Assembly (NCBI GenBank): GCA_965202585.1
Contig: OZ241830.1
Span: 69,936,001 to 70,000,000 of the forward strand
Source of the DNA: Thalia democratica
Lineage: Eukaryota
Direction of reading: 5' to 3'
DNA length: 64,000 bases
In this document: in pieces, positions 1,061 through 53,338 of the stretch
Layout of the letters: every line of letters starts with the position of its first letter
Numbering within the stretch: the first letter of the stretch is position 1
Notes under the pieces: model-generated
What the model saw: the letters and a program-made list of their open reading frames with translations, nothing else
What the model was told of the DNA's origin: nothing
Databases searched by the model: none
Position numbers and translations under genes: made by a program

Positions 1061-1355
1061 CTCTTTTACTTTGTTTTGCGTTGTCAACATTTTTAGGAAA
1101 CTTTCCTTTTATCACAGTAAGACTTGACCTGCTCGACATCCCCTGACTCGAAACTTGTCCCTTGTTCGAGTGAAAGCATATCTCGCTTCCGGTGTTTCCC
1201 CCTTCTTGGTACCCAGGTGAGAAGTAGCCCTGAGAGCTGCTGCCCACCGAGTAGTCGTCAAAATTGTTCCAATCAAAGGTGTCCTGACTTTCTGGTGGTT
1301 TCTGACAATGTGGAAGGTTTCCTGTCAATTGGACGTCCTGCTTAGACGTTTTCAT
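1061..1355 (-). CDS. Isl: Islet-like copy A, coding exon 1 (N-terminal extension); rest of gene lies left of the window
   Basis: ATG at 1355, 98 codons + 1 nt, donor G|GTGAAT. Clear paralog of exon 1 of copies B and C ([24 protein letters not shown] motif). Confidence 0.8.
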
Positions 1356-3922
1356 CTGATATTCGATGACGCACGTTGAGTGAAATTTGGTCAAAGTTCA
1401 AATTTACTTACGACTTAGTACTGTTATAAGCTGAAAAAAGACGAGATGTAACTAGCAGTCTACTTAAGAGCTTTACAAATAAATGATGATACCATAACGT
1501 TTAATCTATTGTGTTGGTCTCATTGTGGTAGCAAAAAAATATATGTAACATTTTTTTATGTCTTAGATATTTTTTCTAAGGAGTTTATTTTCAGAATTAT
1601 AAAAAACTCACAGCTTTAATATGATGAGTTGTTTAGATAAACTTTATTTAAAAAACTTATACAACAGCTAAGTAAACAATTAAATAACTTTCTTTTACTT
1701 TACTTGAAAAGTATATAGTGTTTCTTTATAAAATGTTTTTAAATAAAAAAAATAAATTTTATTTCAGAAACAAGTACTTTAAATTATTAAAAGTTGTAAT
1801 CTTGTGTTAGTACAACTCTAACGTTTCTTTAGAAGTTTAAAGTTAAAGTAAAAGCTGAAATAAAGTAAATATTTTTGACACAGTAAACACATACACTTTT
1901 GTTTTCAAAAGCTCTTTGCACTTATCTTAAAATTTAAAACCCTCAAAACTTATTAACATTTTTAAATAATAATGTTATCAATCTTTTCAAGAGTTTTTTA
2001 ATGTATTTCTCGCTTAGTTAGTAAACTTGAGAGGAATTTTTGCCGGCAATATGGAAAAAATACAACAAAAGAGATGAAAAAATAACAAAAGACAAGTGAT
2101 AAGTAACTTGACATGTTTATAAACATAATTCTTGACAAAAGTTAAATAGTTTTATCGCTATGTATTAAGCAAACATTACAAAACCTAATCGCAAAAAACA
2201 AATTAAAAAAATGGGGATTATATTTTACCATTTTGGAAAAAAAAACTGTCGTTTACTAAGCATTTAAATATACATAAATAAGTTTGATTATGTTTTTAAC
2301 TATTTGTTGGAACAAGATGTGCTCACTAAACTTCACTATCGACAGGCTGTTTACGTCAAAACTTTGTAAAGTAAAATACATGATAAAATTTAGCAAGAAT
2401 CTCTTAAGGCTCGGAGTTTCATTATGACATCAAGACACAACAAAAGGCAAAAAAAAAGGTTTTAAAATAAAAATCTTCAGATAAAAAAAAGGAATTGTAT
2501 GTATTATATTAACTTTACTGCGCATAAAAAAAATCTTGTAATTACATTTTTTTACTATAACAAAAATAACAAAGATTTAGTTTGACACTTACTACCTAGG
2601 TAATGTCTTAATGCAAATATTTTTGTCACTTAACTGCGATAAAAATGTCGTAGAACTGCTGCTCGTATAAATTAAAGATTAATTTATTTTATTGAGCGTA
2701 AATATTTACGTTTTGTTTTGTTGCTGTAATATAACATCAAAAATGTTAGTGTCTTACCAATGAAATTATAAAAAAAATTGTTAGTTACCTCTTTTGTGTC
2801 TAAGGAAAAAAGTTACGAAAATTTGTACAAAATTGTATAACATCGTTATGAGCCGTTAATAAAAACTATCTTTTTAAGGCTGCAATTGTTCTCGTAAAAT
2901 AAAAAGAAATAAACTTTTCTCACGGCAGAAAACTAAATTACAGAAACAAACGTATTGTTAACAGTTGACACAAAACATAAAGGTTATGCTTTTAAAAGTG
3001 TGTGTCAATTAAAATTTTTAGTAGATTATAAAACTAAATGCTTGGCTTAGAAAATAAGTAAAATATACTGCAAACATAGATATTATCATTTAAAATTTTA
3101 TATATACATATGTATTTTATTTTAAACACAAAAAACCTAAATACAAAAAAATCATTGAACAGTTTTCTTTTGTACTTTACAAAGAGTACACAGATATAAC
3201 TACCACATACTGCATGCCAAATATTTCGCAATTAATCTTTCATATCGTGTGGTTTTAAATGTTTTCCAATAAACACTATTTGATTTTAAGGTATTCTCCT
3301 CTCAATACACAAACATCCCTTTTTCTTTAAGTATATAGAACAATAAAATTATACACAGCTAAAAATTCTAACTTAAAAAAAAATACATGTCATTTAAACT
3401 CTTTTTAACATAAAGAATCATAGCAATCTTGTAAGTGTTTAATTATAGCTCTTTTTAAGTTCGTTCAAATTTGTCAACAACAACAAAATGACTCACACTA
3501 AGGCCATTTAATACATTACAGTTAATTAAATTAACAACAAACGCACATACTTTACATACAGGTAGAGTTCCAGATCTGTAATCCTTTATCAAAATTGATT
3601 ACCTTAAAAACTTCCCTTCCTGTTAAGCACAAAATTGATTAGTATATATAAATTAGTTTTAATTGATGCTTTCAACAGTATAGAAAATCAACAAAATAAA
3701 ACTTCAGTTTATCGAAAATTTTTACTTGTAAAGTGAAAGTGTTTTATTATAGCAGTTGCATGACCTGTGTTAAATTATCGACATTAAATATTTGCTTCCA
3801 TTTGGTCGTAACAAAACAAGACAGAGGATTTATGTTAAACCCGCCCAGATGAAGCAAATTAGTAGTTGCTGTGTCAATTCACACAGCACTGAAATATTTT
3901 CAAAATGTGATTGATTCATGCT

Positions 3923-3965
3923 TAACGGTAGCGCCACCGGTGTGCAATCATGCGTTAAATCTGCA
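3923..3965. promoter_or_regulatory. Invariant 43-bp non-coding core (candidate enhancer), copy 1 of 3
   Basis: TAACGGTAGCGCCACCGGTGTGCAATCATGCGTTAAATCTGCA is identical at 3923-3965, 31646-31688 and, inverted, 61263-61305, inside diverged flanks. Confidence 0.55.
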
Positions 3966-4037
3966 TAGAAACGCGTTGATATTAGCAACCAGTCGCTTGA
4001 TATTTTGTTGCATTGTAAGATGAGTGTAAAAAATGAG

Positions 4038-4451
4038 GGGTGCACGACTATTCAAATTCGGACAATTTAAATTGCGACAATTCAAATTGTTTTAAAAAAT
4101 TGAAAGGGCCACAACTAAAAAAGTAATGCATGTTTGTCAAGTATAAAAATATATATGTAGGTTCCTATTAGTATCTACAAGCCATTTTTTTGGTTTTGCA
4201 AAACCTTAAACATTTTATGAGATATGGCTTGCGTAAAGTAAAAAATATAGTTGTTTCTAGTAATTTCAAAATATCGTTAAAAATATTTAAGCTTTTGCAA
4301 AAAAAAAATTGGCTTGTAGGTTTTAATAAGATCTACATACGCTTTTTTTTTTTGAATTTATATTACTGTTTTAACTTTAATGTTATACATATTTTTCAAG
4401 AGTTTGAAATGTCGGAATTCGAGTTGTCCGAATTTGAAATGTCATCTAACC
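4038..4451. mobile_element. Foldback/Mutator-like MITE with long imperfect TIRs and 9-bp TSD
   Basis: Ends GGGTGCACGACTATTCAAATTCGGAC / reverse complement GGTTAGATGACATTTCAAATTCGGAC, built from ~15-bp subrepeats. Inner arms also pair (CTACAAGCCA...TTGCAAAA). Flanks AAAAATGAG (4029-4037) and AAAAATGCG (4452-4460). Paralogous empty site with a single AAAAATGCG at 31755-31763 and, inverted, 61188-61196. Confidence 0.8.
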
Positions 4452-7400
4452 AAAAATGCGACGTAATAAACAAAATAAGTGTTGCAATATTACGTGTATA
4501 ACAATGTAATTGACATTTTAAATTTTGTTGAAATATGTTTATATTTTACATGTTAAAATTTTCTAAATACTTTCTTAGTAGATTATGAAATGGATAAAAA
4601 ATAAAATATACTTTAACTTTCTCAATTTCTAATGTATGTATTACAAATTGAACGGAAACTGTGTAATATATTGAACTGCTAAAAAACATATCAATGTTTG
4701 TCTAAAATGTTGAAAAGTGTTTTTTTTTAAATATTAAAGAGTAATTTAAAGTCGGAGACAGAAACTAGTTTGAAAAAGCTTGTTTTTAGTTGAAAGGTTT
4801 AAAAAAGATAGTTTTTTTGATACAGATAAAATTAAGTCTAAAGTAATAACAAAATTATTAAGTTTAATATTTACTAGAACGTTCGCATATCAAAATTAGA
4901 ATTATGAAGTTTGAAGATAAAACTTAAAATTAAGTTTTAAAGTTTAAATAAACTTGTTTTCATTGACTTAATTTTATGGACAGTATTGACTATTGACCAA
5001 AAATTGTTTTATCTAATATATACTCTACTCTATTTTATTTTTTAAAGCATTATTTATTAGTTTTTACTTATAACTAAAATTTATAAGTAGTCTTATATCA
5101 ATTCATAAGCTATATTCCATTATATTTTAACATCAATTTATACATAAGTATATAAAATAGTAAACGTTTGCAAATAAACAAAAACAAAAAGTTTCAGTCG
5201 TTTTTAAACCTTTCAAATATTATTTTCATTAAATCGTAACTAACCGAAATGCATGACTTTAGAAGAATAAATTAGTTTATGAATAGTACATAAATTAACT
5301 ATAGAATTTTTTTTAAGCGACATCATTTGTCTTTTTATTATCGCAAATATAATATAATTTGCTTCCGTTTCTACAAGATAATAAAACATTCAAAACTATT
5401 AGTTTTACGAGCAGTTTATATTTGAAAAGGTATTATGCTGTCGAAATTTTTTTAAAGCCTTAATAAAACAAATGCAAAATAAAAATTTTAACTCAAATAG
5501 TTTGAGCGATGTTTTTAATGATTTTTTATACCAGTTAGAAAAATTCTAAAAAATAAAAATACGGTCTTAAACTACAAAAGTCGAACATTATTATATTTCT
5601 GCAAGAATATTTTAATAAAAATATTTATCTTTACTTTAAGCCGCATTAAAATAATACAATACAAATCGAGACAGCTTAATCTTTCTAGACACGAATGGCG
5701 ACCAGCAGAGTTTAATCATGTCTACTAAAGTGTTGACAAAATCGGCAGAACAACTTTATGCTAAGAAGTTTTAGTGTATGCAAAAACAAACAAAACAGCC
5801 AACGAACTGTTCTTGCTTCAAAACGGATACTTTACTCTCTATGACGTAATAATGTCGCCTTCTAATACGTAAACAAACCTGATGTGAAATTGATTGATGC
5901 TTAATGGTCAGGATATTTTTAATGAAAATACGTGTAAAATGAAAAAAACACATTAACTTGCAACTTATTATCAATGTCCATAGTGCAACTTTTTTTTGAC
6001 TATTTTGCTTTGTTGTACTGCTTTTTATTCTAAAACCAATACAAGTTGATTTGTTTTTAAAAACTGGCTTTTTATGTAACTTTACACTAAACTTTAACTT
6101 TACTGTGCTGTCTATACACTCATTTAAAAGTCTGCATCTCTTAAACGCAAAGAAAAATAACTAAAAAACACAACACACAAATTGAAGTTTATAGTTTTTC
6201 TGTGATAAAAAAGAACACTTAATACAAAAACACGACTAATCAAACATTGCAAAGTATGTTTTGTGTTATTTTATCATTATGTAATGTAATAAAGGTACAG
6301 TTACAAAAAAAACTATAATCTTTAACACCAGAGTGAAAATGTACTTTTATAATTGCATTCGATAAAACAACTTTAAACTTTTTATTATATAACAGTGTAA
6401 TTGTTTTTAAAAATAATGGGTTCAGTTAATTTTGTACTTAAAGAGGTTTTTATAGTAGAAAAATAAAAACTAAGCTCGCCTGGTTATAAAGATTGACAGT
6501 TTTCTGTTAGTAATGTACTTTAATAACTTTCAATACGGGTTTATTTTAATAATTACTGAAAGGCTATTAAATAATTTATATAATATCTTTTTTATTTCAT
6601 AATAAAAAAGTAATTGTTTTAACCTTAATATCTTTACCACAAACGCACAGACAAATCTAAAACTTTTTATTAATGTTTTAGAATAGAATTGTCACATTTG
6701 TAACAAAAATATTAATGTGCACTATTAATAGGTTAATATTTAAACCAATTAAACAATTTCAAGCACAAATATTTTTGCCATGTTCTAAAAACATGTTTTT
6801 ATTTCTTTTCTACAACACACATACGTACTAATAGTTTATATTCGAGAAGCAACTACAATGCTAAATAATGAAATTAATAGGAAATTCAAACTAAAATATT
6901 AAATCGGTCTCATGCAGGCTAGTTTAGTTTCTGCAAAAAAACATTACAACAAGAAAGTAAGGTTATTGTTTGAAATTATTAAGTCGTCGCTATTGTGCTG
7001 CTTTAATAAAAAAACTTTTTTTTCTTGTATTTATATTCGCCTATCACTTTCTGTAAGGAATTGCTTAAAATATTTCCGAACAGTAAGCTGTCATAACAAA
7101 CACAGAAAATATCGACAAACTGCGAAACACAAACAAACATTGTTACTTTGGCAAACTATCAACTGTGACCGCACCTCATTAATATCACTGTAGATATTTT
7201 TGATAATTTGTGAATTCAGCACGCTTCATTAAAGAGTCTCAAAACAAGACTTTCACAAGTTAATCCTGGTTGTTTTAATTCACAGCTTAGTTATTAAAAC
7301 GGTTTTCGTTTTTATTTTTTAAGCCGGAAACCATAACAAACTAAGTTCTGTTGTACTTATATTACGTCCTTTTTAAAAAAAACAGCTTAATAGTTTATAA

Positions 7401-10400
7401 AAGACTTTTCGTCTAAATTAATTTCTATTTTTTAGTCGATTCAACTTAAAATAAATATTACAGTAAGTTTTCTAAAACTAAAAATATATTAAAGTACAAA
7501 CTGGTTTTGCAAGTAAATTTGAAATTGATTAAAAGCTACCTTTTCGATAAAATAAAATGCATATCAGAGAAAAAGTTTTAAGCTTTTTATTAAGTTAAAA
7601 ACAACAGATAAATTCTGTATTGACTTTGAAACATATTTTTTTTTACTACAATCGCTTTTATTGTTTACATTCTTTAAAATCTATTCTTTTAAGTAAATCT
7701 GCTATTTAGTATTCTGGTTTTTTACAGTTTTTTACAATACCTTTGATAGATTTTAATGCAAATCTGAAATTTTATTTAGTATATAAACTTCACTTTACAA
7801 GTATCTAAAAAACATACTCTCTGCAGTAAACAAGAAAACTTAGCAACTCCTGTTTAAATTAATGAAATCAATAAAATCAATACTTAACTTTTCAATTCAG
7901 ATTTCTCATCGATACATGAAACGTTTCAATCAAACGTGAGAACTTATAAATTATAACCTTGAAAAACCTGTTCAGCTGTTCAGGGTTTTATTACATATTT
8001 TGTCTTTTGATTTAAAATACAACACCTGAACACCTTTTTCTATTGTTACGTCAGCACATACTTTAACGCTTAGTTTACTTTAAAGCCGCCATTTTAAACC
8101 TTATTTCCACAACAAATTCTATGAGGTATAGTGTTTCGCTTTTAGCCCTTTTATGTACGAAACTTTCACACACCAAGCTGTTATACCGTTGAAAAGTTTG
8201 AAACAAAACTTTTTTTAATTTTTTTTCGAAAAAACGTCAATCCTAAGAGTTTAAATAAATAAATAAAAAAACACTTTCCCATGAACGACAAAAAATTAAA
8301 AACGCGCATTTTAGTTTCTAATATCTTGCTTTAAAAAAACAAAGAACACTGATTTTTAAGTCTAATAAAAATCAATAAAAGTATTAAAAAAAAGTTATAA
8401 CCTATACATTGTCTACCTAAAAAACATGACCATAAAAACTGCGATAAAGTATTTTGTTATAACAAAAACCTTAAATTATTAAAACAAACTAACTGTGGTT
8501 TTAGTTTTCAGATTAATAAAAAAAAAATTGCCTTTGATTTTACACTTTTTTGTTTGTTGCGCTTCTAATCGAGACCTAAACGCAACAGTAATGCTTTAAA
8601 TTTCGCCAAATGTTTTATCTCCTTTTTACTTTTTTTTCTTCTCTGGTTAGCTTGATTACAGCTCTTGGTCGCCGCACTTGTGGCCTTTTTAAGAAATATT
8701 AAGAATTAAATTGTAAAATAATAAATAGTAAGTTATTTTTTATTTGTATTTATTTTTTATGTTAATGCATATACAAATACAAACAATTTTTTAAAGCAAT
8801 AAAAAATTTAGTTTTCAAATAAGGATAAAAAATTTTCCTCCTTTTGTAGTTATTTTACAACATTTTCAGCAAAAGTATTAAATTTCATTTTAGTATCCAG
8901 ACCATAATGAGCAGTTTTAATACTTAAAAGTTCCAAAAAATAGTAGCTTATTTGTACTACTGCTTGCTTTTGTTTTTTAGTATCAACTAAATTTTATCAA
9001 AACTATGAAAATGTTGTCTTACATACATTAACGTTAGCTTAGTTTTTAGAAAACTAAAATTAGATCATAAGATTATTACTGAACTAAACGGTAAGGTTAC
9101 AATCTCTATAAGAGAAATATAGCTTAACATTTTAAATTTTTTGATAAAGATTTAATCAAACGCGGCATATAACTTCGAGACCTACGTTTTGTTTTTTAAA
9201 TACTTTATTTTTATTTCATCACATAATGCTTTCGTAAAGACGAAAGAAAACCTTATCATATTCAGAATAAATTGTAATTTAAAATATAACAAATTAAAAG
9301 AAATATTTTAGAGGTTTAATACAGTCGAGCTTTTTTTTATTATTATTGAAAACTATATGACGAAATACTTAACTCTTTGTAATTTTAGTATATTTCTCAC
9401 ATATTTAAACATCACCAGCAAATAAAGATCAACTTAAATAAAGTTTAAGAGATTTTATTCTGTTTAAGTTGAATTCAAACTATATCATTTCTAATCTTAA
9501 TGATTTGTTATAAGTTCTTTAATTTACAAAAATCCACTATGTAATAAATAGGTTGATTAACACCAAAAGTTCTAAAAATATGAAAAAAAAACAATTCATC
9601 TTTTGGTAATTGGCATAGATAATTTCTCGATTTAAGATAAAAAGTTTTTTATAATGATTAATGCGCGACAGTTAGTTTCTTGGTAGTAAATTTGGGTGTT
9701 AATTTTTAACAGTTGATTTTGGTATGTATCCATCAAATATTTTTTTATATTTATCTAGTGAAATTCTTGTTAGCAACTATTACACTATTTAATTTAATTT
9801 AAAAAACTAAGCTAAAATAAGAAATATTTTTATTTCTTAAAAATTAGTAAACAATTCAAATTCAGCGAAACAAAACTTAACAAACAGTTTTATTAACATA
9901 TTTTTTACAGATAACCTTTTATTATGCAATTGTATTCAAGTTTAGAATCATGCTTTAAGCTTACTAATACTGTATTTTTAGGAACTAATTTTCAACAGTT
10001 TTATTATGTTTCAGAAATTAAGTTTCCTTAAATCACTAACTTTACAATGCCTTTTTAATAATAAATGTTTAAACGGATAAAAAAATTTACACGTTTTGTA
10101 TAACTTGTTTTGATCCAGCACATACTTTTATAGCAGATATGCAATTTTAAATCGATCACAATTGTAGCTAAAATAGCTACTTTATCCACAAGTCAACAAT
10201 CATCAAACATTCAACAATTTTTGCCACCAACAAAACAGCATGAATAATTTATCAGTTGCCGAGATTCTTTTGCCGTGTTACTTGGAAGATTGATATGTCA
10301 TCAACAACAATAAGTCATAGCGCTACACTTTTCTTCCGCAATTTAAAGTTCTAAGCTCAACTGATAACCTCAGATTGATACTCGTAAGATAAGAACTGTG

Positions 10401-11670
10401 ACGTTATTTATATGTCATAAACGTGTATTTTTAGTTTAGAAGCAATTTCTATTGCTTGAAAAGATTTTAATACCATGCTTACTTCAAGTAATTGTTATTT
10501 TTTACTCTATTTTTATTATTTTAAGTTGTTTAAGCAAGGCTAATTTAATTTATTATGTATAAACTAGTATTGGTTTAGAAAAAAAAGCTAATATAGTTTT
10601 GTCTTTAAATAATAAAAAAAATGATTATCAAAAAAAAATCATAAAATGACTTAGACTAATTATAAATACGATAGTATGTTAATATTAAGACAACCAATTC
10701 TTATTAGATTTTTTATTTATATTAAATAAAAATTTTATAGGTAACAAAATATACAATCAAATGGTTATAGCTATAATAATTTTTATATTTATTAGGTAAA
10801 TTAAAACTTTATTTGCTTAAAATTTTTGGTAAGTACATATTCCATTTAACTTATCATTAAACTAATAAACTTTTTTAGCTAGTGCTACACTCATTTTTAA
10901 AATGTTATAATTTTAATCTTTCTAAAATAATTATAAATCAAAGTGTTCCATATGGTCCCAAATGGGAAACACAAGTTAGGCGGCGATAAGATGCAAAAGG
11001 ACGTGACTAGTAAAGCGGCCATAAGTAGGTTACTTAAATACAAATAAAAAAGATATTAACACTAGACACTTTCGGGTTTGTATTGAAGAACAAATAAAAA
11101 AGTTTTAGGTATTATTTACGAGAAGTTTTAAATTTGCACCAAATATTCTGGATTTACAATGAGCGGGGCAATATTTTCCTAATATTTTAATAATAATTAG
11201 TTTTTTTTAATTTTCTGAAAAAAGGCGCTTCTAGAATTGAGTTTAAAAAACAGTGATTTAAATGAGTGTAATAGTTTTAAGTATCATATCGGGATTTATA
11301 AAACTTGTTAAATTACTTGATTGTTATTTTTATTTATTTATATATAGTTCGCATTAGAACAACAACAAACTTAGGGAGATTAACTTATATAAATATTGTT
11401 TAAAATAAGTAAAAAAAAAATTCAAATAGAAACTTTTAAATTTTACGTTCTAGTTTTTACACAAAACTACTAAAAAAGTAATTTTAAAACTTTTTAATTG
11501 CAGATGTCAAGTCTTTTGAAAAAATAAATAACCGTATTGGTACATGAAACAGTTTTCCAACAAAAAGATTCAAAACAATTATTTCAAAAGCAAACTGGTA
11601 TGGTTCTAGATTTTAAAAGTGGAAAAAAAAGATTCCATTAACGCTTGATCAAGCGAGCAAAATTTCATGG

Positions 11671-11705
11671 TGACAGCCGCAAGTGTAATTTTGCATGGCA
11701 ACGAG
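11671..11705. promoter_or_regulatory. Invariant 35-bp non-coding core (candidate enhancer), copy 1 of 3
   Basis: TGACAGCCGCAAGTGTAATTTTGCATGGCAACGAG is identical at 11671-11705, 37821-37855 and, inverted, 54660-54694. Confidence 0.55.
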
Positions 11706-13959
11706 ATATCATCGTGGTTACTACGCAACATATAACCAAGATACATATCGATTCAAATGTGATTAGTACGTTAATATATTCTTTTGCGGCTTTATAATTA
11801 TTGAGTCTAATGCAAAATGTGGTAAATTTGGTTTCGTTCGCTCTCTTAAGGAGTCTAGTTTACTACGAAAATAAAGAAAGTCATAGTACTGAAAAATTGA
11901 AAACATGGAAATTTTGATAAAATTAAAACCAACAAAAAACGGATTTTATTCTATGAAATATTTTGATAATTAAATAGACTCTGCAATTTAATATCTTGAA
12001 AAAATAATGAAACAGTCAAATTAAACCGAACGTTTAAACTACTTTTAATTATAACAACTCATCATGATAAGTGATGCTAACTAAATGTAATTTTTGAAAT
12101 TTTTCATTTGCCAAACGAAAATTTTGTATTCAATTTTATTGTTTGTTTGTGATCGGTTGCTCTTAGATTTAATTTGTATGAAACTGTTAGAGTACTAATG
12201 TGACACGTAAGTAGGGATGTCGTGACAGTAAAAATAAAGGAGTCAAATTGAAACACACGGTAAAATTTATTATTTTATAAAAGCTGTTTATCAAGTCCAA
12301 AAAATAGTTTCTAAATTTAATTTGTTATTTACACTAAGATATAACTGAACTCCTTATAATAAATTGATATGCTTGATACCTTGAAGTTACCAGAGTTTAT
12401 GTCACTAGATGTGTTGATAAAAAACTCAAAATTTTGTATGGAAGAAATTATCGCATTTACGGTGAGCAAATGTTTTATAATTACTTTTATGTTTTTATTT
12501 ATGATTTAAAAAAACTACTTGCTTTTGTTTTTTTAAATATTTTTGTAAGTACAGCTATAACTGCTTGTATATTTTTTTTGCACAGAATTAAAAGTTGGAT
12601 GGCAAAATAACTGTGAAACTGGCCGACCCGCCAATGTTTAAAAAATTGAAATAGAATCAGACCCGCGAGCCTTTTAATTTTGCGCCTAAAGCTTATAATA
12701 TTTTATATTAAAATTTAGAAATCTACTGCTTGCTTGTGATTTTATTTTTTAATTTTGTTAAATAAATAAAAACTCCCGTAAGCATTGATACTGATTAAGT
12801 TTTTGAAAAATATTTTAGAACTAAAAATAAGCATTTAGAACACAACGTTTTATCTGTATATAAACGTTTTTACGGGAAGTGACTGCCTTATAAAAGCGTA
12901 TAAAAGAGAAAGATTACTGTATAACTTTTTAAATATTTGCAACTTTGAAAAGTCTTTTTTATATTAAGATTAGCAAAACTAAATTACACAAACCATTATA
13001 ACCGATCTAAAAATCTTGTTCGTAAAATTACACCTAAGATTATTTAAGGCTTTAATTGTAAATTATATTTGCGTAAAAACACTTTACACGGTATTATAAT
13101 TGAAATTTATAAGACCTAATTTTTTATTATATTTTTATTCAAAGTATTCTTAGAAAATAAAATTAATTTAAAATTAAACTTATGTCGTTTTGAAAGTGTT
13201 CTGTTGGCAACCACATATGCTTTTTAAACACATTAAATACTTATTAAGGACGTCTAAATCTTGCTTACAAATATTTTACAGCGAATTCACTTAAATTTCA
13301 TAAATAGTTTAGTAACAACTTAGGTCCAGAATAACAGTTATTTTGAAAAAAAGAAAAAACAATAATTTATTAATAAATCAAGTTATTTGATAATGAATCG
13401 TAAAACATAAATAATACTAAAAGAAAATAACTTAAAAAACTTAAACACAACTTAAACACATTTTAGAAGAAATTAAATGAATCCTTAAAGGAAAAAAAAC
13501 AGTAACAAAGCACTTTAAAGATTTCAAAAACCTTAGTTATAGTTATAAATTATCTTTTTGTTCAGGTTAAAACCTTTGTGTATACAAAAATAAAGTTTTA
13601 CCGAATATAATCTAGCAACGGTCGATAATTATTTAAAGACAAAAATGATATTTACGGTTTATTCAATTTATTAAAAGTGTTTATTCAGTTACTTAAAGTA
13701 GTGCAAAAAACTGAGAAAAACTTCAATTACTAATTTTATTGACTTATATCTTTAGATACATCTAAATGTTAATAATAAATAGCTAAAATAAACATTTTGT
13801 TATAGTAATGGATTTAAATGTAACTTAAACGAAAATAATTTTTATTGCGTATAAACTAAGAGAAGAATTACAAAATATCAAGAAACTAAAAATTACTAAA
13901 TCAATAATAAACCTACACTTGTAACTGAAATTAGATACAATAAAATAAATTTTGATTCT

Positions 13960-15529: not shown

Positions 15530-15730
15530 TTAAAATTCTAAACTAGGAAGGTACATTTTAGTGTTAAAGTCGTTCAACAAAAAAGGTTTGTTATTTGATT
15601 TACCTTCGCCATACCTTTTACTAGTAAACACAGCAATATTAAAGTCTTCCTGATCACAATATCTATTTTGATACAAAACAGAAAACTGATCACTTAAACT
15701 TCTTCTAAGTTTTTCAGAACTAGATGGCAT
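15530..15730 (-). pseudogene. 5' fragment of a second kelch-repeat copy
   Basis: MPSSSEKLRRSLSDQFSVLYQNRYCDQEDFNIAVF...KMYLPSL, then homology stops abruptly. Confidence 0.8.
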
Positions 15731-41820: not shown

Positions 41821-42200
41821 AATGGGCGAACTAAACTTACTCAAAGGCCGCAGGCCTGATTCGATCCTTGGAAAGAAACTGACCATCCCGCCAATGATTA
41901 CAAACCTAAAGAGAAATCCGACCTTAAAAACATAAAAATACAGCCTGCGTTTAAATCTGGACTGATGAACTAAAGTTTGAGGTTTACACTAGATATCCTG
42001 GAATTAAAGAAAAGAAAAAAATCTTTTTAAAATAGATATCGGGAAACTTGAAACTTACTTTACATATAGTAAACAAAAGATTACATATAATTAATATATA
42101 ATAATTTAATAATATTTGTGAGTTCAATAAGATTGAAATGCTTCAAACAGCCAAATATTTTTTACATCTGGACCGCCGACTAAAAACGTTGCCAGCTCGA
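41821..42200. mobile_element. Possible decayed hAT-type MITE
   Basis: GC-richer ends (ATGGGCGAACT...GGCCGCAGGCC; reverse complement GAGCTGGCAACGTTTTTAGTCGGCGGTCC) loosely resemble hAT MITE termini. No TSD seen. Confidence 0.25.
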
Positions 42201-44117
42201 ATACCAATATTTACATTAGTTTTAGCTAATCAATCCATCATTTTTGTTAATAAGTCTTTGAATTAGTATGTAAAAAAACTATTTCATTTTTTTATTAAGT
42301 TTCATAAAAGATATTTCACTACAGATTATTATGATTATATGATAGATAACTTAGAAATTTATTCAATTATTATATATATTAACTATATCTGATCTTTTAT
42401 TTTAAACAATTTATACTTTTCTAGCTTATTCAATGAAAGTGTAGTTTTAAAAAAAGTTTCTTTATAATTCAAAATTTTTATTGATTTATTTTGTAAAAAC
42501 AACAAAAAAAGATTAGTTTTCTGAAACTGAAACGAAAATTAATTTAACATAATAGATTGTTTTGATTTATCATTTACTTAACTTTTATTAATTTTCATTA
42601 ACTAAAGTCATTTAACAGTCTAGGTTTCGTAAAAAGATATTAAAAGACTTTTGTGAAAAAGATTTCAAGAAACCCTGACAAACTGCTTAAAATATACGTT
42701 GCTTTTGTAATTGATTGTGTTTAATAAATTTATTCAGTACGCCTAAGTTGTAATAAATACTTTATGCTGTGTTATGCTGATCATTTTAAAATGTTTAAAT
42801 TTATACAGGCAAAGAGCTTTTATAGACAATACAAGCAGCTCGTCAATAACTCTAAAACTTTAATATCCAGCTGCAGCATCGAAACTGGGCGATATATTTA
42901 TTTATATTACATTCTAAAACTAAAGTAAAATCAGAAATCATTAATCTTCTCGCTTTAGTTAACACATGTTATCAATCATTCGGGTGTCATTAATAATGTT
43001 GTCTAAAAATGCACCTAAGTGCTAAATGACAGTCTTTGATATGATATATAATTCAATTAACCTTCGACAAAAATAATCGTAACGATATTTCAGCCATCCT
43101 ATGAAAGTTTAGTACTAAATCTTAAACTTAAACTTGAAATTTTTTAGTATATTTTAGACATATGAACTGCTATTAAAAAACAGGTTTGAGTGTCAAATAA
43201 ATATAAAACTTAAAATTTTTGCAAGTTTGTGAAACAATTTTTTTTAAAGATTTTCTCTTATTTAGCTGACTTTAACACCAAAAATATTAACTTTAAGGAA
43301 TTTTCAATCTAGGTAATACTATATGTGATATTTATATATTTTCAAAAACATTACAAAAAAATATGATAAATCAGAGTTATTGTAAGGTATTTACTTTGTA
43401 CTGCATTTCTATATTATTAATCGTAATACATATGTATGATTTAAATAATAAAAAGCAAAACAGACAGAATAACTTTAAATACTCAAAGAAAAAATCACAC
43501 GTACTGGTTGCTCATTTTCATTAAAAAATACTATTACTTTTCTTTTTGCAAAAATTTCACCTATTAAGTTCGTAAAACTTTAAGAAAAAATAAACTAAAT
43601 TTTGTGTTAGAATATATTTCATTTTATGTTATTTTATCTTAAAATTTGTAAGAAACTGTTGCTTAAGTAATTATTTTCAAATAAAGTAAATCGTATGTAA
43701 AACAACTTCTTCTAAATATAAGACAATCTAATGAAAACAAGTGTCATTTGAATTATTTAAATAGCTTTTTAAAGGTTTTGCCAAAAAGTAGTTGGAAATA
43801 AAAGTTAAAATTTATCTACAAGCTGTTTTATAGTCTTTTATTGAAAACTTGATTTAATTTATTTTTCATTAACAGGTTAGTTAATTCTGTAAATTAGCTT
43901 AAAAGTAATGAATTATAATTTATAATTTTTATATTTTACAATCTAGTTGTGTTTTTTCACTTAAGTATATAAACTAAATTGAAATATTTTTAAAAGAGCG
44001 ACAAAAGCTGTCGAATGAAAATTCCTAATTCGAAAAAGAGCAAAAAAAAAATCATTCAAAGCAAAATATGTGACAATCAAATAAAAAATGCAGTTCCAGC
44101 ATTGCTTCTCAAACATA

Positions 44118-44238
44118 TTATGACGTCACAACTAGCTGCAAATCGTGGTGGAGAAGAGTAGCGCAGAAGATTGTGGAGAGATCGTAGTTGTGGGAGGATA
44201 CGGAGGGGATGCTGCAAACCTCCGAGCAATCAGACAAA
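44118..44238 (-). CDS. Isl: Islet C terminal exon (5'-truncated, altered C-terminus)
   Basis: Acceptor TACTAAATAG|T, phase 2. [22 protein letters not shown] matches B. The first ~11 codons of the B exon are missing, and a 14-nt deletion shifts the end to DLQLVVTS*. Confidence 0.6.
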
Positions 44239-47200
44239 CTATTTAGTACAGCTAGCTACTTAAATTATAGCTGATTTAGTATATAGTTTAATGCACATAC
44301 TACTTATGAAAAAAAGTTAAAAAGGAAAAACTTAATTAAGTCATTTATTACAAATTATTGAATATTACGCATCAAAAATAACGCACATAGTGACATTATA
44401 AAACTTAGTAAAGCTTGAACCAATTTTATAAAATAAAAGTGGTTTTAATAAAACAAAAAAAAGAATAGCTTTTTTGACAAGCTACTTAAGTTGAAGATGC
44501 ACAACAAACGTTTTTAGCTTTCTACTGAATACGAGTATTAAATGAAGCTTAAAAAATTATAGTTTTTAAAATATCATCTACAAGTCTGATGCTATCCTTT
44601 TTTGTTTATTTTAGTAAACAAACTTTTTTTTATAATTTTCTTTATACAACAAACTGTGGTATCAGATCGCGTGTGATGAAATAAGAATTGATCAGTTTAC
44701 TCTGTTTCTAGCTTCATGAAAATTGAGCACTTTGTTTGCTTCTTAGTTAGTTTTTACCAAGAAATTTCGTGCAAGAAATGTGAAAAGATTAAAGGTCAAA
44801 CGTGGCAAATCATTAAGAATAAGAAATTCAACATCTCAGTTGTTGAACACTGATCGATAATATCATTAATACTTAAAAAGGTTAAATCGCCAACTATTAT
44901 TCTGCTCTGTTTTAAAGCCATTAACACAAAAAGGCGTTTTAGTACATTTTGCTTTTTGGCGTAATGTAGTGTTTTTCAGCCACTTTTTTCCATACAAGAT
45001 ATAACTAAACCCAAGTTAACTACTTCCGTAACCCTTTTATCTTTGTAATCAACAACTTATTGAGACAAGTGGTTTAGATTGTTATTTAAACTTAAATGTA
45101 AAAAACATAGGCATAAATTATTACTGCTAAATTTAAAAGTAATTACTACTTCTGTAACTATTCTAAGACCACTTTAACTTGTTTGATCTGTTTGGTTTTG
45201 CCTGCTACTGATAAAATTTTTAAACACTTTTATTTCATAGTTATGTTAATAATTTAAATTTACTTGTTTTTAAAATGATTATCAACCATCAAGCCTGCTG
45301 CTTTTGTTGCTCGCAACTCTGCTGCCCTCTTAACAACAAGATTAATAATGTTACTTTTTTCCAATATATTTTTCATAATGAATATAAGTGTTTTAAATTT
45401 GGTTTAACTATTTTAAGCTATCTGGTTTGTATGAAGTATAATATGTATTAACAAAAAGTATATTATTTTTATCTTTAAATCTACAAAATTATACAGTCTT
45501 AATTGTGTGAAATATCCTTAACAACTTTTATATATTTAAAATAATCATCAAGCTAACCTGCTGCCTTTCTTCTTCGCCGTTCTTCATCTTCTGCTTCTGC
45601 TGATGCTTCATAGCGATCTTCTTGTCCTTGCACCGCTTGTTCTGGAACCACACCCTGATGACTCTTTGAGGAAGTCCCGTCATCGTGGTCAGCTGCTCCT
45701 TCATGATGGCGTCGGGTCTGCAGTTGTTCTCGTAGAAGGTGTGCAGCACCGTCAGCTGCTTCTCGTTCAGCACCGTCCTCTGTCTCGTCGTCTTCCCCTT
45801 GTTCTTGTTCGATCTTGCTGAGTGTCCTGATTCCTTGCCGATGTGTCCTCCCCTGTTTATGCAACCTGAGTGCTCTGAGTTGATGTTCTGTCCTAGAATT
45901 AAATGGTCCGGGTAGGCATCTGTAAATTTTAAGTAGTTAAAGTTTAGGTAACTATAAAACAGTCTATAAAATTTAACTTGAGATAAGCTTTTATGCTTTT
46001 GTCTGTAGGTTATTTTATAAAATAACTTATTTTGTTAAAATAAGAAGTACACGTTAAAACTATTTCTCTGTTGTAAAAGCACTATAAAACTGTTGTTTAA
46101 AACATGGATGTCTAATAACTAAAAAAAGTATACTTAAAATTACTTTAAAAAAACAGAAGAACCGGTGCATATTAGCTCAACTTTTTCACGTAGAAAATGG
46201 CGTATAACGATTAAAGCATATTTTGAATTTCATCATAATCAATTTGAAACTTAAAATATACTTTGGCACAAATTTTAACAAATTAAAAACTAATTTTAGC
46301 TTTGTATTCTTTAATACTCTGTAATGGTTTAAATAAGTATTTTTGTAAACAAAGCTATTAGAAATCAAAGATATATATTTTCATTAGCAAAAAGCCAAAA
46401 ATCCAACCTTTTGTATAAATAAGTTTAATTTGATCTAAAATTCCGATAAGTCCAATTGTTTCGACTGCAGCAGTTAACCAGGTTAAATGACTTTTCTTTA
46501 AACCTTTACCCATAGCAAGTTACTTTATAAGCTGCGACTTGATTTTATCTTTGTTTTAATAAATTAATTGCAGTTCAACGAGAAACTTTACTACTGTACT
46601 TAGGATGACATCTAAGTATGACAGCAAAAGTCACTTTATAAAACATTCACTTTTGTTGTAATGAATCTTTAAAGATGAATAGATAGGTGGGAACAGCATT
46701 TATTAGGTAACACTTTATGTGAGTTGCACCATTCTCAATTCATCGATTTGAGGTATTGAAGGTATTTAAGTTTTTTGTTTTAGAAAACCGCTTTTGCTTA
46801 GATTTTTAGTTTATAAACAATTTGAGGTTGTAAACTTTGGCTGAATTCAAAAAATAACAACGGTTTGTAAATGGAAAATAAAAAAACTCAAAATAACAAA
46901 AACTTAAATTTAATAATAAAATATTGCGTGCTATTATTTACTGTAACCTAAATTTTTAGAGTAATTTGTATCTTTGCGAATTGAAAAAAATAACAACTAT
47001 ATAGCTTTGTTTATAAAACTTTATGATAAATATTTTAAAACATTTATAAAAATCTAGTCGAATTTAAGTTCTATAAACTGTTTATTATCAAGTTTTCTCA
47101 AATATCGTGATTGAGAAAATAATGCGAACCTTTAATAAGCAAAGCAATGGTATTAATACAGCCAAGACTTAATAATGCATAATCGCGAGTTAAAACAGAT

Positions 47201-50200
47201 AATAAACAAAATGCAAAAATCAAAACATGAAAAAGCCAAAAATTCTTAACACTAGTGTGTTTCAACGATAAAAGGGGTATTAAAAGAGTAATCCTTTCAA
47301 GTTTTTTTTTGCGCAAAATCTGATTACAGAGTGCGAGGTTATTTGTGCGAGGTTAAGTAACAAAGATTATCCAATTATCGCACAGTAGCCGGCAGTTGTA
47401 GGAATTTTATATGCATAAATGATTTATGTTTCAGCTTCTAATATCTCATGCATTAGAGGTAAACAAGTGGTTAAAACGGTAACTTTGTATGATAAAGTTA
47501 CACAAACCCTTACTTTGTGGCTTAAAGTATTTTAATAACATGTTTCTAAACTGTATTTAAACTTAGATTATCTGTTCAAATTAGCTAAAAAATCTTTAAA
47601 TTTTTTAAATTAAGTCTAAATTATTTAACTGTATTTTTTGCAGAGGATATATTCTTAAATAAAAAACAACGCTGTTGAACTGTCTTTAAGTTCTAGGTAG
47701 AACAAGCATTTTGCTACAACTTGTTTTTTATTCACAAAACATTTTAATGCGGTAATAACTATGTTTATATACATAAAAATAAATTAAAATAACACGCTGA
47801 ATTAAAATAATTTTATCAATTAAACTGTATAATGTATGAATATAAATTAGAGATCGCTTACTAATAATTCTGTTGTCATCTGTTGAACTGTTAAAAATTC
47901 TTTCGTAATCTCTTATGCAGTAGATACTTCCATCTTCGTTACACACGAATGAATCTCCTGGTATCAGTTGATTATGACAAGCGTAACATCTGTTTAGTAG
48001 TAAAAAACATTTATTAATTACTGTCATTAAAATTTCATATATGCTGAACTACATTAAAAATAATATTATATATACTAGGTTTAACATAAAACAAGAATCA
48101 GTTTCAATAAAACTTTGTTTTAAAATAATTTGATTCTGGATAATGTTATATTTTATAATTATATGCACGTTATGGAAGTCTTGACTGTTTTATGGGTTAC
48201 AAAATATAGACTAAAATAGTTTTTAATAGTTCTCACTAACCTAAAACACTGAACGTGGTACTTTTTATCTCTTACAGACATCATCAAATCCCCCTTGACC
48301 AGTCCAAGTTTGCACTTTGCGCATTTTGGCGCAAATAAGCTGAAATTAATGATTGATTTTTAAGTTAGTTGTAAATATCGATCATGCAGCTAGTAACTCT
48401 TAAAAAATTTAAATTGGAGTTTTTATAATAAAAAAAAGCAATAAAATTGCTTTTAAAATACTTTAATTACAAGTATAAAAGCTAAAGCGTTTCGTAAACT
48501 GATATTAAAATTGCTGTTTTATAGACACAATATAAAAAATATAATCATTGTACATAAAATAACTAATTATGGGATGGTCCATAAAATCAAAGTTTTTCTT
48601 TTATAAATAAACGACGTTCTATAGTTCATTTAATAAAGTTTTAAGCGTTATTTAATAGACATAATTAGTGACATATTATCTTTGAGACTTTATTGAAAAG
48701 CTTAGGTTTTAATACTGTTACTAACAGTTAATTTAAAAAAACTCTACAAATTTTAAGCAAGTTGATAGTTTTTATAGTAACATTTTTGTTTAAGTAATTT
48801 AAGTTTTTAAGTGTATATTTAGGTTAATTTAGTTTTTCCTAACTTTTGCTTTATATGTTTTTACAATTGGGCGCTAAATGCTCAATATTTTTTTGGTATC
48901 AAAACTATATTATTAACACTCCCAGAAAAACTCATGTTAACCAGTTAAGTGAAATAAATACAAAGCATTAATACACTATTATGACGTAACAATACGCCAT
49001 TAGGTGCTTCTCTAAGCTTCCTGATAATGAGCTCCCGTAAGATTTCCTTGCTGCAACAAATGGCGACATTTTTACTTCTCCGGTGACGTTTTGTTACTTT
49101 GTACAGTTCGTTGAGTCTGTCTGCTTGTATTTGAAGGCACAAGTGTCGCAGACCGAATTAATAGAAATCAATCTTACTGATGTGACGTTATCCGCATTAC
49201 AACTTGGAAGCTGACCTCAACAGCTATTATGACGTAATAGTAAGACTTGAATTCAAGCTTTTCTTTTTAAAATTTTATTGAATAATTAATCAAATCTCCA
49301 TTAGTCTTGGACATGAAAACAAACTCTTTATAATTAAAGCTTATTTTTTGGGCCATGGTTTGACTCTTTAAATAAGTAAGTTCATGAATAATTAGAAATA
49401 AGAAAAAAAGTCTTATGTTAAACAACATGCGCCTCTTTCTACCTGAAATTTTTCAAAACTTTTAAAAAATTTCAATATGAAAAAATTGATATTCGGTTGA
49501 CTGCAAAAAAAAGACATGTAGAATCAGTGATAAGTAAGCAGAGTTTTTTGCAATCGATAACATATGTCGGCTGTCTCGGTTCAACCAGACAAAAACCACA
49601 ATTTCTTGTATTTTATGTTGTTATTACAAACCTGTTACTTTGCGGCTTTTCCTGTTTAATTTCGAATAAATTATAATAACTTTGGGCAAATACTTAAAAA
49701 GTTTTCAGGTTTTTAAATTTGTTCGAGCATTTTGTATACATTTATTAATTCTAGTTTGTTTTTGGATATATTGAAAAGCATGAAAAATAATAAACGAATC
49801 CTAATTAGTTGCATCCACTATTAAGAAACACTATTTTTCCACAAGTCACTACTCTACTTTTTTAATCTTATAAAAAATATCGAATTTTTCTCGCTTGTAG
49901 ATTTTAATGTATTGATTACACCATCGCAAAACTAGCATATGGGAAAACTTCGCAAACTTGAACTTACGACCTTTAGTAGACGTGGAGTCATTCAGAATGA
50001 CGTCATTTGAATTTCCGACGGCAGTAAGCTGAGTTGCAAATCAAAATCCGTTTATTTATTGTTTTAGAGGCTGTAAGAACAAAATAAAAACTCATTTATT
50101 TTACTCAACTTGTAATTAGTTATACAAATATCACTAAACGCTTTATAATACTATTTTCAATGTCTTAAAATATCAAAACTGAAAACTTTTTGCTGTTGAT

Positions 50201-53200
50201 CAATTTTCTTGTTTGCCTAAACATGCTTTATGATTTATAGTTTCGCTTTAATTGAATTTTACGTAAAATATCACAGATATAATTACCTGAATACTTAAGT
50301 AACATTATTTTATAAAATGACGTATATGATTATATGACTTTTATTAAAAATTATTGCTTTTCAATATTTTTACAGTTTGGAACCATGTTTGTATAAGTTG
50401 ACATTTGACTGCTACGTGTTTTTTATATTTAACCAAAAGTGTACTTACTGATACTTTGGCTTTATACCAAAAGCGAAAACTGCAAGCAACAATTTGGCAG
50501 CAGCATATAAGCAATCACAATCGATTGTCACATAACTACCTTCACACATACTAATTGACAATATGGTAGGATCTCAAGCAGCATGAATCAAATTATTTCT
50601 AAGAAAAATCAATTTGTCAAATATTAGTTAAGTGGTGACACTTCACTGGTTAAGAGCCGTTAGTGTTTGTTATGACGTCATAGATACATATCAGGTAAGT
50701 TTGCAGCCTTACAATTTGTAATAGGAACTTTCAGTTTGTATCACTTCAAATAAAAACTTACTTTCAAATTTTATAAATATATTTTTTATCTAAGTAATGA
50801 TACGATATGAGTCTAGCAAGACATTTGTTTTATTATTCCAAAGGTCGGCAAGGGGCAATTGAGACAGAGACAAGCCTCAATTCGACGTTGCAAGTTGCTT
50901 GTCGGCCGACGTCAGGTTCGTGTGTGAGATCGGAACCTTTTAATTGCTCCTCCCCAATTTGTAGCGAGGCTGCCTAGTAACAACCGGCATTGTTTGTGAT
51001 TGACACATTCCACTGAGCGCACTCGAGTTTCCTATTTTGTTGTTACGTCACAATAGTGGTTTGATCTTTTTGAATGGAATTCACTTTTTTGAAACTTGTA
51101 ACATATTATCACAAGTCTTGCATAGGTGAGCGTAAATTTACTTAATGACATTAAATAGCTGAAACTGAAAATTAAAAAACTAAACAGAATTTGTATAAAA
51201 GTAGTAAAGTAATTTATTTGTTAATGTTTTTATGTTATTATAAACAAACTTTTGAACCTTAACAAAATTTAACAAACTTGTAAGATTTGTTCTAATATAT
51301 TTATTAAAAATTAAATAAGTTTCTGATAATATCTTTAACATTTTTACCTAAACTGCTATGCTTTTATACAACTTAACAACAAAATAAACATACATTGAGT
51401 TAAGAAAAGTGAAAAGTGTAAGATATACAACTAAAAAAGAATTTTAAACAGCATAAAGTATTTCTTTTTCATATTATAAAATTTTTCTTTAAAAGCAAAC
51501 TTTGAAAAACTTTAAGTTTTACTCAAAAGTTCTCAGTCAGGTAATAGATGCTGTAAATTGTAATTAGTATTGACAACTCAATAAGCCGAATGGTTATTGT
51601 CGATAACTTAACAATTAAATCATTAGTAAGTCCGTTTTAAAAATGTTTTTATAATGCGCTTTTGAGTTGCTTTAAGCCGTAAACTAAATTTATGAGCCCG
51701 GAAATAATGAAACATAACTATTGTTCCTTAAAAAAATAACTTTTTTTAACGTTTACATTATATGATCCAAAAAGTATATAAAACACTGTAGTTTTACCAA
51801 CACGTTTTTATTTTATTCACTTGACATGTGAGTTAATCGAACCGACAGTTTATTAGGTCAACAAGCGAAATCAACTTAACAAATATAAAATTTACTTTTG
51901 TTTTGCAAACAAAAAATTTAAAAAATATATTTAAAAGGTGTTTTAAATCAACAGTGTCAGAATTAAAAAGTTCATATCTGTATTTCTACTAAATATTCTT
52001 TAACCGGTTATACGTCATTATCAAATTTTTTAAATTGCGTTTTCTATCAAAATTATCTTATCATCAAAATAAAATTATTAAAAATGATGTTATGTATCAA
52101 TTTTTAGATGTAACTTTATATTTTCTTTTAAAAGCATAATGTTGAACTAAGAAAAACATTTTCGATTAAATTTATAAATTCTATTGTAACATATTTAATA
52201 ATTTTTTATACAAATTAATTTCTTAGAAATTTTTTATTAGTTTTATTGGTAAACTATTACTACATACATTATATTTTTAGCTTAAGAATACAATCGGCTC
52301 ATGTTAAACTATAAACTTAGATGTAATGCAAACATAAACTTTAAGTTTTTATTTTTGTTTATAAGACTGTTTAAAATAAACAAACTGAAAATAGTCGTTT
52401 TTGCAGTAAGGTTTGTTGTCCCTGACGAAGCAGGTTCTCATATCAGTCAGGTTGCATCCACATGCGGCGCACTTTAGACATTTTGAATGCCAGTTGACCC
52501 CCTGTGAGGTTCTGATGTAGGGACCGTGGATCAAGTGACAACAACCCATGCAAGTTCTGGTAAGAAGACCTAAAGAGTATTTCCAACAAGCTATAAATTA
52601 TAAAAAGATCAATTTGAAAACCAACCTTAGTAATTCATTGTAAATGTTTTCTTATTTGATGTGACTTACTCGTTATATAATGACAAAATCGACAGTTTAA
52701 TTTATCATTATTCTTATATTAACTGTACTTAATTTTAGGTTATAAGAAATTAGATACTTTAATATACTAAATAAAATATTAAAATTTTAGTTATCTATGT
52801 AACTAGCAATAGATTTTAAAAGATTTTATAAAATAGTTGTTGATCTCTCAGACTCATATCTAGACAAGTTCTGCATTTAACTGAAGTATTGAAAAAAATT
52901 AAGTTTATCAAATAAGATACTCATTTTAAAACACATTTGAGTAAAACATTAACATAAACAAAAAGCATATCCAGTTTAATTTTTTTTTGAATTTGTTAAA
53001 CATCGAAAGTACGTAAAAAGAAAGTTTTATAAAAATACTACTAACCTCTTTTACTTTTTTGTGTGTCGGTATTTTGAAGATCATCATTTATCATAATCTG
53101 ACTTGACCTGCTTGACATTGGGGTCATCCCCTGGCTTGAAACTTGTCCCTGGTTTGAGTAAAAACTAATTTCGCTTCCGGTGATTCCCCCTTCTTCGTAC

Positions 53201-53338
53201 CCAGGTGAGAAGTAGCCCTGAGAGCGGCTGCCCACCGAGTAGTCGTCAAAACTATTCCAATCAAAAATGTCCTGACTTTCTGGTGGTTTGTGACAAGGTG
53301 GAAGGTCTCCTGTCAACTTGACCATCTGCTGAGAGGTT
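44118..53338 (-). CDS. Isl: Islet-like copy C gene model: LIM1-LIM2-homeodomain, lacking the post-homeodomain WKxLSD exon; ~418 aa if exon 1 equals that of B
   Basis: join(53046-53338+, 52386-52569, 48241-48339, 47862-47989, 45558-45919, 45264-45328, 44118-44238), all GT-AG and frame-consistent. By alignment to B the ATG would fall ~5 nt into the N gap. Confidence 0.75.
45264..45328 (-). CDS. Candidate 65-nt linker exon of Islet C
   Basis: TTGTTGTTAAG|AGG...AAC AA|GTAAAT. GC-richer island, stop-free ([21 protein letters not shown]), phase 0 to 2, which joins the homeobox exon to the truncated last exon in its conserved frame. Prediction only. Confidence 0.5.
45558..45919 (-). CDS. Isl: Islet C homeobox exon
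   Basis: TTTACAG|AT...CAG|GTTAGC, 362 nt, phase 1 to 0. [14 protein letters not shown]...[30 protein letters not shown] is diagnostic of the Islet class. Confidence 0.95.
47862..47989 (-). CDS. Isl: Islet C exon 4 (second half of LIM2)
   Basis: 128 nt, same splice sites and phases as B exon 4. Confidence 0.9.
48241..48339 (-). CDS. Isl: Islet C exon 3 (first half of LIM2)
   Basis: 99 nt, [32 protein letters not shown]. Confidence 0.9.
52386..52569 (-). CDS. Isl: Islet C exon 2 (LIM1)
   Basis: 184 nt, all zinc ligands retained, same splice sites as B. Confidence 0.9.
53046..53338 (-). CDS. Isl: Islet C coding exon 1 (5' end cut by gap)
   Basis: Paralog of A and B exon 1, donor G|GTTAG. Confidence 0.8.

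Follow-up and report, generated by a model that had tools for sequence, protein, structure and literature searches.

The stretch of Thalia democratica DNA analysed here (C6:69936001-70000000, 64,000 nucleotides of contig OZ241830.1 in GenBank assembly GCA_965202585.1, below called the window) carries head-to-tail units of about 25-28 kb, in which a non-coding block, a kelch gene and an Islet-type LIM-homeobox gene recur in this order. Self-comparison of the window delimits two units, A and B, and the start of a third, which is cut by a run of N (Table 1). Units and Islet copies are located in window coordinates, negative positions being left of the window. The initial annotation, made from the letters of the window, had proposed at least three Islet genes in tandem, duplicated along with a kelch gene and the whole upstream region. 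The co-duplication is borne out by the self-comparison and by Pfam domains, and the recurring order of block, kelch gene and Islet gene by exon mapping. The self dot-plot that it had recommended shows direct repeats that start 27,138 and 24,850 bases apart, plus an inverted block. Exon 1 recurs exactly where it had been reported, at 1355, 28493 and ~53343, the third ATG falling in the N run. The count of at least three genes needs correction in both directions. The window holds three first exons and only two gene bodies, since all genes are on the minus strand and exon 1 at 1355 belongs to a gene body left of the window (Islet Z; LIM1 exon -604 to -780, last exon near -15000). Genome-wide, the copies far exceed three, with 24 homeoboxes in two arrays.

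The Islet gene model is based on alignment of exons and their flanks in ten copies. It has seven exons, all boundaries being AG..GT, and reads in one frame from the ATG to the stop codon. Pfam finds LIM domains on the LIM1, LIM2a and LIM2b exons of both Islet A and Islet B, and also reports Homeodomain and Kelch_1. Two tandem LIM domains at the N-terminal side, which characterise the Islet subfamily, are therefore present, and the pattern of Cys, His and Asp ligands in the LIM domains is retained in 10 of 10 copies. A homeodomain follows the LIM domains on the C-terminal side in Islet B (Pfam Homeodomain, 4.6e-16) and in 23 other copies. Among solved structures, the homeodomain of Islet B is most similar to ISL-1 (89 bits, against 52 for Lhx4, 40 for LMX1A and 40 for Lhx9), and LIM1 is also most similar to ISL-1 (59 bits, against 35-36 for Lhx3/Lhx4). 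Within this set of solved structures, both domains are thus closer to Islet than to the other LIM-homeobox proteins. A reading with genes on the plus strand was rejected, because every LIM, homeobox and kelch frame found in six-frame scans is on the minus strand.

Exon 1 and the C-terminal exon have no match in Pfam or among solved chains. Exon 1 is a conserved open frame in 11 copies on C6 and 10 copies on C4, with in-frame insertions and deletions (indels) only, and it is followed by a GT donor. In two copies, R2 (116634-116855) and S (159446-159652), this donor is changed to TT, and all exons of these copies are open. A, Z, C and other copies share a conserved C-terminal exon, which is found at 11 places on C6 and at 12 on C4 and is absent from B. 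It may resemble vertebrate Islet in the vicinity of the Lhx3-binding part.

Copy numbers were obtained by searching the whole 802-Mb assembly with Islet exons taken singly. The 24 homeobox-bearing copies comprise 11 on C6, within ~440 kb at 69.82-70.26 Mb, and 13 on C4, within ~540 kb at 36.17-36.71 Mb, the latter being known from the genome search tables only. In the searches with LIM1, the C-terminal exon, exon 1 and others, all C6 copies are nearer to A or B than any C4 copy is. This indicates either that the two arrays grew after their founders split, or that they have been homogenised internally. A short unplaced contig (C899:1-10038) contains exon 1, LIM1 and a weak match to the homeobox exon at its very end; by identity this copy resembles the C4-type copies, and the contig could represent either a haplotig or a unit not placed in the assembly.

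The neighbourhood of the window was read over 354 kb, and ten Islet copies were mapped in it (L1, L2, Z, A, B, C, R1, R2, S and T). In this extension in both directions, which had been recommended, further copies are seen on either side of the window. One N-free stretch carries six copies, namely L1, L2, a relic, Z, A and B. Within it Z, A and B, and within another gap-free stretch C, R1 and R2, are whole-unit repeats arranged head to tail. Gene-bearing units thus follow one another in contiguous sequence, as in a tandem array under concerted evolution. For the greater part of their length, units A and B show 66-82% identity (66-96% as a full range), and they reach 95.6% in one 4.2-kb stretch (24293-28488 against 49144-53338). 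The non-coding block of unit A is 83% identical to an inverted copy at 103201-114589, and scans of open reading frames (ORFs) and of frames revealed no long conserved ORF in it.

The coding exons have been kept open while the copies diverged. In all six exon types, the retained exons are open in 10 of 10 copies, and indels are multiples of three; the frame of the N-terminal exon survives indels of 9 and 15 nucleotides. With counts summed over exons, the pooled pairwise ratio of non-synonymous to synonymous substitution rates (dN/dS, or omega) is 0.25-0.52, at dS of 0.12-0.37. Introns are 66-88% identical between copies. A tree of the ten C6 copies, for which the alignments of six exon regions and their flanks were set side by side, contains two clades, each with 100% bootstrap: (L1,(Z,(S,(L2,R2)))) and (T,((B,R1),(A,C))).

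Two regions depart from this level of divergence. One is a tract in the intron between LIM1 and LIM2a (24600-27600), over which A is nearly identical to B and R1. In its flanks the identity falls to 82-91%, and the other copies are 65-93% identical over the same stretch. The other is the homeobox core, which is 99-100% identical in the 11 C6 copies and 94-96% identical in the 13 C4 copies. The proportions of non-synonymous and synonymous differences (pN and pS) in the core are 0 and 0.039, compared with pS of 0.11-0.27 for the remaining exons. In its 5' part, the homeobox exon evolves neutrally (pN 0.099, pS 0.095). Likeness is therefore greater within than between the arrays, and local tracts of near-identity are present, as expected under concerted evolution. 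The near-identical tract and the uniform core fit gene conversion within the arrays, as far as can be inferred from the aligned copies. The high GC content at third codon positions (GC3) of the core stands in a region of 26% GC, a value seen throughout the window (~26%).

Both gene bodies inside the window have lost exons. Compared with copy C, the homeobox exon of Islet A was removed by a clean deletion of ~2.8 kb at 21848/21853, and the genome-wide search with the homeobox core gives no match in unit A. Joining LIM2b to the C-terminal exon causes a frame shift, with TAA after four codons, so that at most a LIM-only product of ~215 residues is predicted. Because its homeobox exon is deleted, Islet A is an Islet-derived gene and not a LIM-homeodomain gene. 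Islet B retains the homeobox and has a deletion between 44749 and 44236 compared with copy C. The remnant of its last exon lacks the acceptor and the first ~13 codons and carries a 14-nucleotide deletion. From this structure, the product of Islet B would end shortly after the homeodomain. At its other end, the expected ATG at 53343 and the first two codons are inside the N run.

Table 1. Units, genes and other features of the Islet array in and beside the window, and numbers of Islet exons in the assembly.
Feature	Position	Strand	Remarks
Unit A	~998-28130		Self-comparison
Unit B	28131-52981		Self-comparison
Third unit, start only	52982-53338		Self-comparison; then 100-N run 53339-53438
Islet Z, coding exon 1	1129-1355	-	ATG at 1355; rest of gene left of window
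Islet A	19992-28493	-	Homeobox exon missing; frames open, splice boundaries AG..GT
Islet A, exon 1	28493-28258	-	
Islet A, LIM1	27705-27535	-	
Islet A, LIM2a	23742-23644	-	
Islet A, LIM2b	23391-23264	-	
Islet A, C-terminal exon	20715-20521	-	
Islet A, last exon	20144-19992	-	
Islet B	44142-53338	-	C-terminal exon deleted; splice sites checked
Islet B, exon 1, visible part	53338-53108	-	
Islet B, LIM1	52556-52386	-	
Islet B, LIM2a	48339-48241	-	
Islet B, LIM2b	47989-47862	-	
Islet B, homeobox exon	45919-45558	-	
Islet B, homeobox core	45618-45794	-	177 nucleotides, 59 codons, GC3 0.88
Islet B, last-exon remnant	44240-44142	-	
Copy C, exon 1	64605	+	Beyond window
Copy C, LIM1	65398-65574	+	Beyond window
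Copy C, homeobox	71843-72127	+	Beyond window
Near-identical tract, A against B/R1	24600-27600		LIM1-LIM2a intron; 97-100% in 200-base windows
Kelch A	13963-14898	-	Intronless kelch-repeat ORF; in-frame TAA at 14505-14503; Pfam Kelch_1 6e-13
Partial 5' duplicate of kelch A	15539-15736		
Kelch B	40153-41121	-	Intact intronless ORF, 323 amino acids from first Met; TAA at 40152-40150
Non-coding block, unit A	2846-12916		Upstream of Islet Z, downstream of kelch A; patchy 66-81% alignment to 29094-39060
Non-coding block, unit B	29094-39060		Upstream of Islet A, downstream of kelch B; aligns to 2846-12916
N gap	53339-53438		100 N; hides join to next contig
Contig R	53439-147532 (C6:69989439-70083532)		94,094 bases
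Contig R, part in window	53439-64000	+	Inverted non-coding block upstream of plus-strand copy C
Twin of R1	37477-53338		R1 at 107439-91553, inverted in scaffold; 97.9% over 15.9 kb
Relic unit 1	-29032 to -28910		Partial LIM1 only
Relic unit 2	185208-197087		LIM2a fragment, C-terminal exon, last exon
LIM1 exon, whole-assembly search			C6 14 (3 partial), C4 12, C899 1
177-nucleotide homeobox core, whole-assembly search			C6 11, C4 13
C-terminal exon, whole-assembly search			C6 11, C4 12
Exon 1, whole-assembly search			C6 11, C4 10, C899 1

These facts make it quite likely that the window lies inside a long-lived multigene Islet array that is subject to moderate constraint, ongoing sequence exchange and piecemeal decay. 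A unit of ~25-28 kb, consisting of an Islet gene, the kelch gene downstream and the ~10-kb block upstream of the next Islet gene, would have been amplified on C6 to 11 homeobox copies plus relics. Repeated unequal crossing-over or segmental duplication could be the mechanism. The 13 further Islet copies form a sister array on C4, from which the kelch gene is apparently missing. With dS of 0.12-0.37 and introns 66-88% identical, the copies are old; they are of two subtypes, with mostly open exons under moderate purifying selection, and exchange by gene conversion would continue among them while single units decay. In the window, such decay is represented by the loss of the homeobox exon in Islet A, the loss of the C-terminal exons in Islet B and the stop codon in kelch A.

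Several points weigh against this interpretation. The orthology to Islet is taken from best matches to solved structures and not from a tree with outgroups. The omega values of private lineages, which are based on small counts, are 0.76 for A, 0.68 for C and 0.61 for B, in comparison with 0.24-0.31 for L1 and L2, and from these values several Islet copies may be drifting. In addition, contig R is circularly permuted and the left contig ends in 1.5 kb identical to R1, so that B and R1 may be one locus counted twice, and the order and orientation of units beside the N gap are given by scaffolding only.

The last two points lead to the alternative that the array is partly an artefact of assembly. 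Here, B and R1 would be one locus present twice, contig R would be a loop of the assembly graph, inserted with arbitrary orientation and copy number, and the inverted block, along with one or more of the Islet copies, would be a product of assembly and scaffolding. This is a serious possibility, although it falls somewhat short of being probable. Contig R starts at the unit position equal to 39061 and ends at the equivalent of 39062. Its first and last bases are thus exactly adjacent in unit coordinates, as expected of a linearised loop of the assembly graph. In these coordinates its end, "...GATTAT", runs on directly into its start, "TGTATAACTT...". The next contig (147633-198587) ends ~1.9 kb from the unit position of its own start. 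Moreover, all three N gaps in the 354 kb, at 53339, 147533 and 198588 (C6:69989339, 70083533 and 70134588), coincide with switches of Islet orientation. The permuted contig R and the location of the gaps make the inverted orientation after the gap doubtful. If contig R were flipped, a uniformly minus-oriented array would result, with unit-consistent joins at both ends. From the inverted block (53440-63992, matching 39060-29094 in reverse complement with 76-86% identity), a fourth copy past 64000 had been suspected. Copy C is indeed found there, with exon 1 at 64605, but its inverted placement is doubtful, contig R being permuted.

The end of the left contig is close to R1 not only over its last 15.9 kb. 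Over the final 1,501 bases the identity reaches 100%, the Islet exons of B and R1 are identical, and their kelch proteins differ by one residue. Near-identity of the kind seen between haplotypes is found only for B against R1, and not for A against B. Read-derived contigs (Logan) from three runs of one sample, and from one run labelled as another organism, were compared over 34500-40499. At variable sites left of 37477, their letters mostly agree with the block of unit C, and from ~38800 on with R1. At many sites where B and R1 differ, the read-derived contigs have the R1 letter only. The matches to C and R1 indicate that both versions are present in the read-derived contigs, which bears on presence only and not on the number of loci. 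The run with the different organism label (X3) has contigs at least 95% identical over 38623-40411, with R1 letters at several variable sites. This indicates that a close relative, or else a sample under a different label, also has the unit.

However, a difference of ~2% over 14 kb separates B from R1, and the identity of their flanks is only 70-84%, which shows that the two do not simply represent one set of reads assembled a second time. A fourth orientation switch, from L2 to Z (between -43240 and -29032), is in gap-free sequence, so inverted units do occur. An artefact would touch one or two copies and the orientation, while the array would stand, since Z, A and B share one contig and C, R1 and R2 another, and these copies differ by 5-30%. 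The uncertainty at the gap leaves Z, A and B untouched because they share one contig. For annotation, the loop-like contig and the 98% twin are a warning that the copy number and orientation given by the scaffold are not to be trusted here.

A different alternative is that one or a few Islet copies are functional, and that the rest, including both genes in the window, are pseudogenes kept intact-looking by conversion. The lesions of Islet A and Islet B, the relics with one to three exons at -29032 and 185208-197087, and the loss of the exon-1 donor in R2 and S would all be explained in this way. So would private omega values of 0.57-0.76 in A, B, C, Z and T, and conversion is evident from the intron tract and the homeobox core. 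But no stop or frameshift is found in the retained exons of ten copies despite dS of 0.12-0.37, and pairwise omega is 0.25-0.5. Exons outside the homeobox core differ at 3-12% of non-synonymous sites, so they have not simply been overwritten by conversion, and the N-terminal exon stays in frame through the two long indels mentioned above. An array composed mostly of pseudogenes is therefore rather unlikely, though it retains some weight.

It can also be speculated that the ~24 Islet genes are separately regulated and diversified, forming an expanded LIM code that would include LIM-only variants of the A type and C-terminus-less variants of the B type. This is improbable. If it were true, a selector gene that is single-copy in other invertebrates would have become a family serving the diversification of cell types or stages. 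Each copy would have its own ~10-kb upstream block, and the A- and B-type variants might modulate the complexes of LIM-homeodomain proteins and cofactors. Finally, the idea that one locus appears as units A and B because its haplotypes were left uncollapsed can be set aside as extremely improbable: A adjoins B in one gap-free contig, the two are unequal in length (27,138 against 24,850 bases), they have lost different exons and, apart from the single 4.2-kb stretch, they are mostly 66-82% identical, and the shared contig together with a divergence of 4-34% excludes haplotype duplicates.

Considered as a multigene array, the locus differs in several ways from Islet genes elsewhere. The order of a pair of N-terminal LIM domains and then a homeodomain is shared with ISL1, ISL2, Drosophila tailup and C. 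elegans lim-7. Copy number is not shared. LIM-homeobox subfamilies have one gene each in C. elegans and Drosophila and two in mammals, and Hydra has no Islet (PMC2828406). The usual Islet number assumed in the initial annotation agrees with this, at one in fly and worm and two in mammals, where the two are unlinked (PMC2828406). T. democratica has ~24 copies in two tandem arrays. The array genes also have an extra N-terminal coding exon of ~78 residues without a family match, and an intron inside LIM2. Single copies lack the homeobox (A) or the C-terminus (B).

The predicted product of Islet A, with two LIM domains and no homeodomain, has the architecture of LMO proteins. It differs from them in origin, since Islet A is a LIM-homeobox gene that recently lost an exon by deletion, and does not descend from LMO genes. 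LMO and LIM-homeodomain proteins are competitors for the cofactor Ldb.

Local tandem amplification of homeobox genes has been described in other classes. The closest parallels in print are a mega-array of ANTP-class genes in Actinernus, an anemone (PMC10598428), duplicated homeobox genes of Lepidoptera (PMC9977156), and a LEUTX array in rabbit with gene conversion among ETCHbox genes (PMC8208926). As reported, these arrays are like the Islet array in local tandem amplification with divergence, loss and gene conversion. They belong to the ANTP or PRD class, while the array here is of the LIM class. A further difference is that its repeat unit is a whole locus of ~25 kb with a kelch neighbour and an upstream block. 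A full-text literature search found no report of an array of Islet or any other LIM-class gene. The Islet array belongs among the lineage-specific homeobox arrays.

LIM-homeobox genes are among the developmental regulators most stable in copy number. In this respect, ~24 Islet genes whose exons are open, whose dN/dS is well below 1 and which show signs of concerted evolution are an unusual natural experiment. It shows a possible outcome when a selector gene for neurons and heart is amplified along with the regulatory sequence around it. The variants without a homeobox or a C-terminus are ready material on the tolerance of LIM-domain dosage and on cofactor competition.

Scans of the window with Rfam, for tRNA genes and for tandem repeats found nothing. 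Six-frame searches for the GH6 and cellulose-synthase domains, which are markers of tunicates, gave no match, as could also happen with a gene split by introns. Amplification through a transposon carrying the unit was considered and rejected: no transposase-like ORF or terminal repeat was seen among the window ORFs of at least 55 amino acids, in a general ORF scan with no further search.

The kelch genes A and B encode proteins that are 86% identical, with one stop in A. Omega among the kelch copies is 0.4-0.7. For kelch B, Pfam reports kelch-type models only: Kelch_1 (4.6e-18), Kelch_2 and the propeller models KLHDC2, KLHL20 and DRC7. No BTB or BACK domain is found by Pfam in the 341-residue open frame of kelch B, which thus lacks the BTB-BACK-kelch organisation of KLHL proteins. 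Its neighbours in the ESM Atlas are KLHL-type kelch clusters. Several kelch motifs and these neighbours are points of likeness to the kelch beta-propeller proteins of the KLHL and KLHDC groups. Kelch B differs from them in being intronless, ~323 amino acids long and without BTB or BACK.

The 5' part of kelch A is duplicated internally, with 14746-14958 being 88% identical to 15542-15755, ~800 bases upstream. An open frame of 77 codons is found there (15533-15763, minus strand). Among 127 scored matches, close kelch relatives (60-100% identity) are confined to the C6 array, and 0 of the 127 are in the C4 array. The intronless kelch-only family is very large, with the 127 scored matches and 4,971 first-look candidates genome-wide. 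Arrays of this family are also present at 67.7-70.1 and 81.2-81.3 Mb of C5, and at 13.5-14.9, 20.6-22.2 and 87.9-90.5 Mb of C1.

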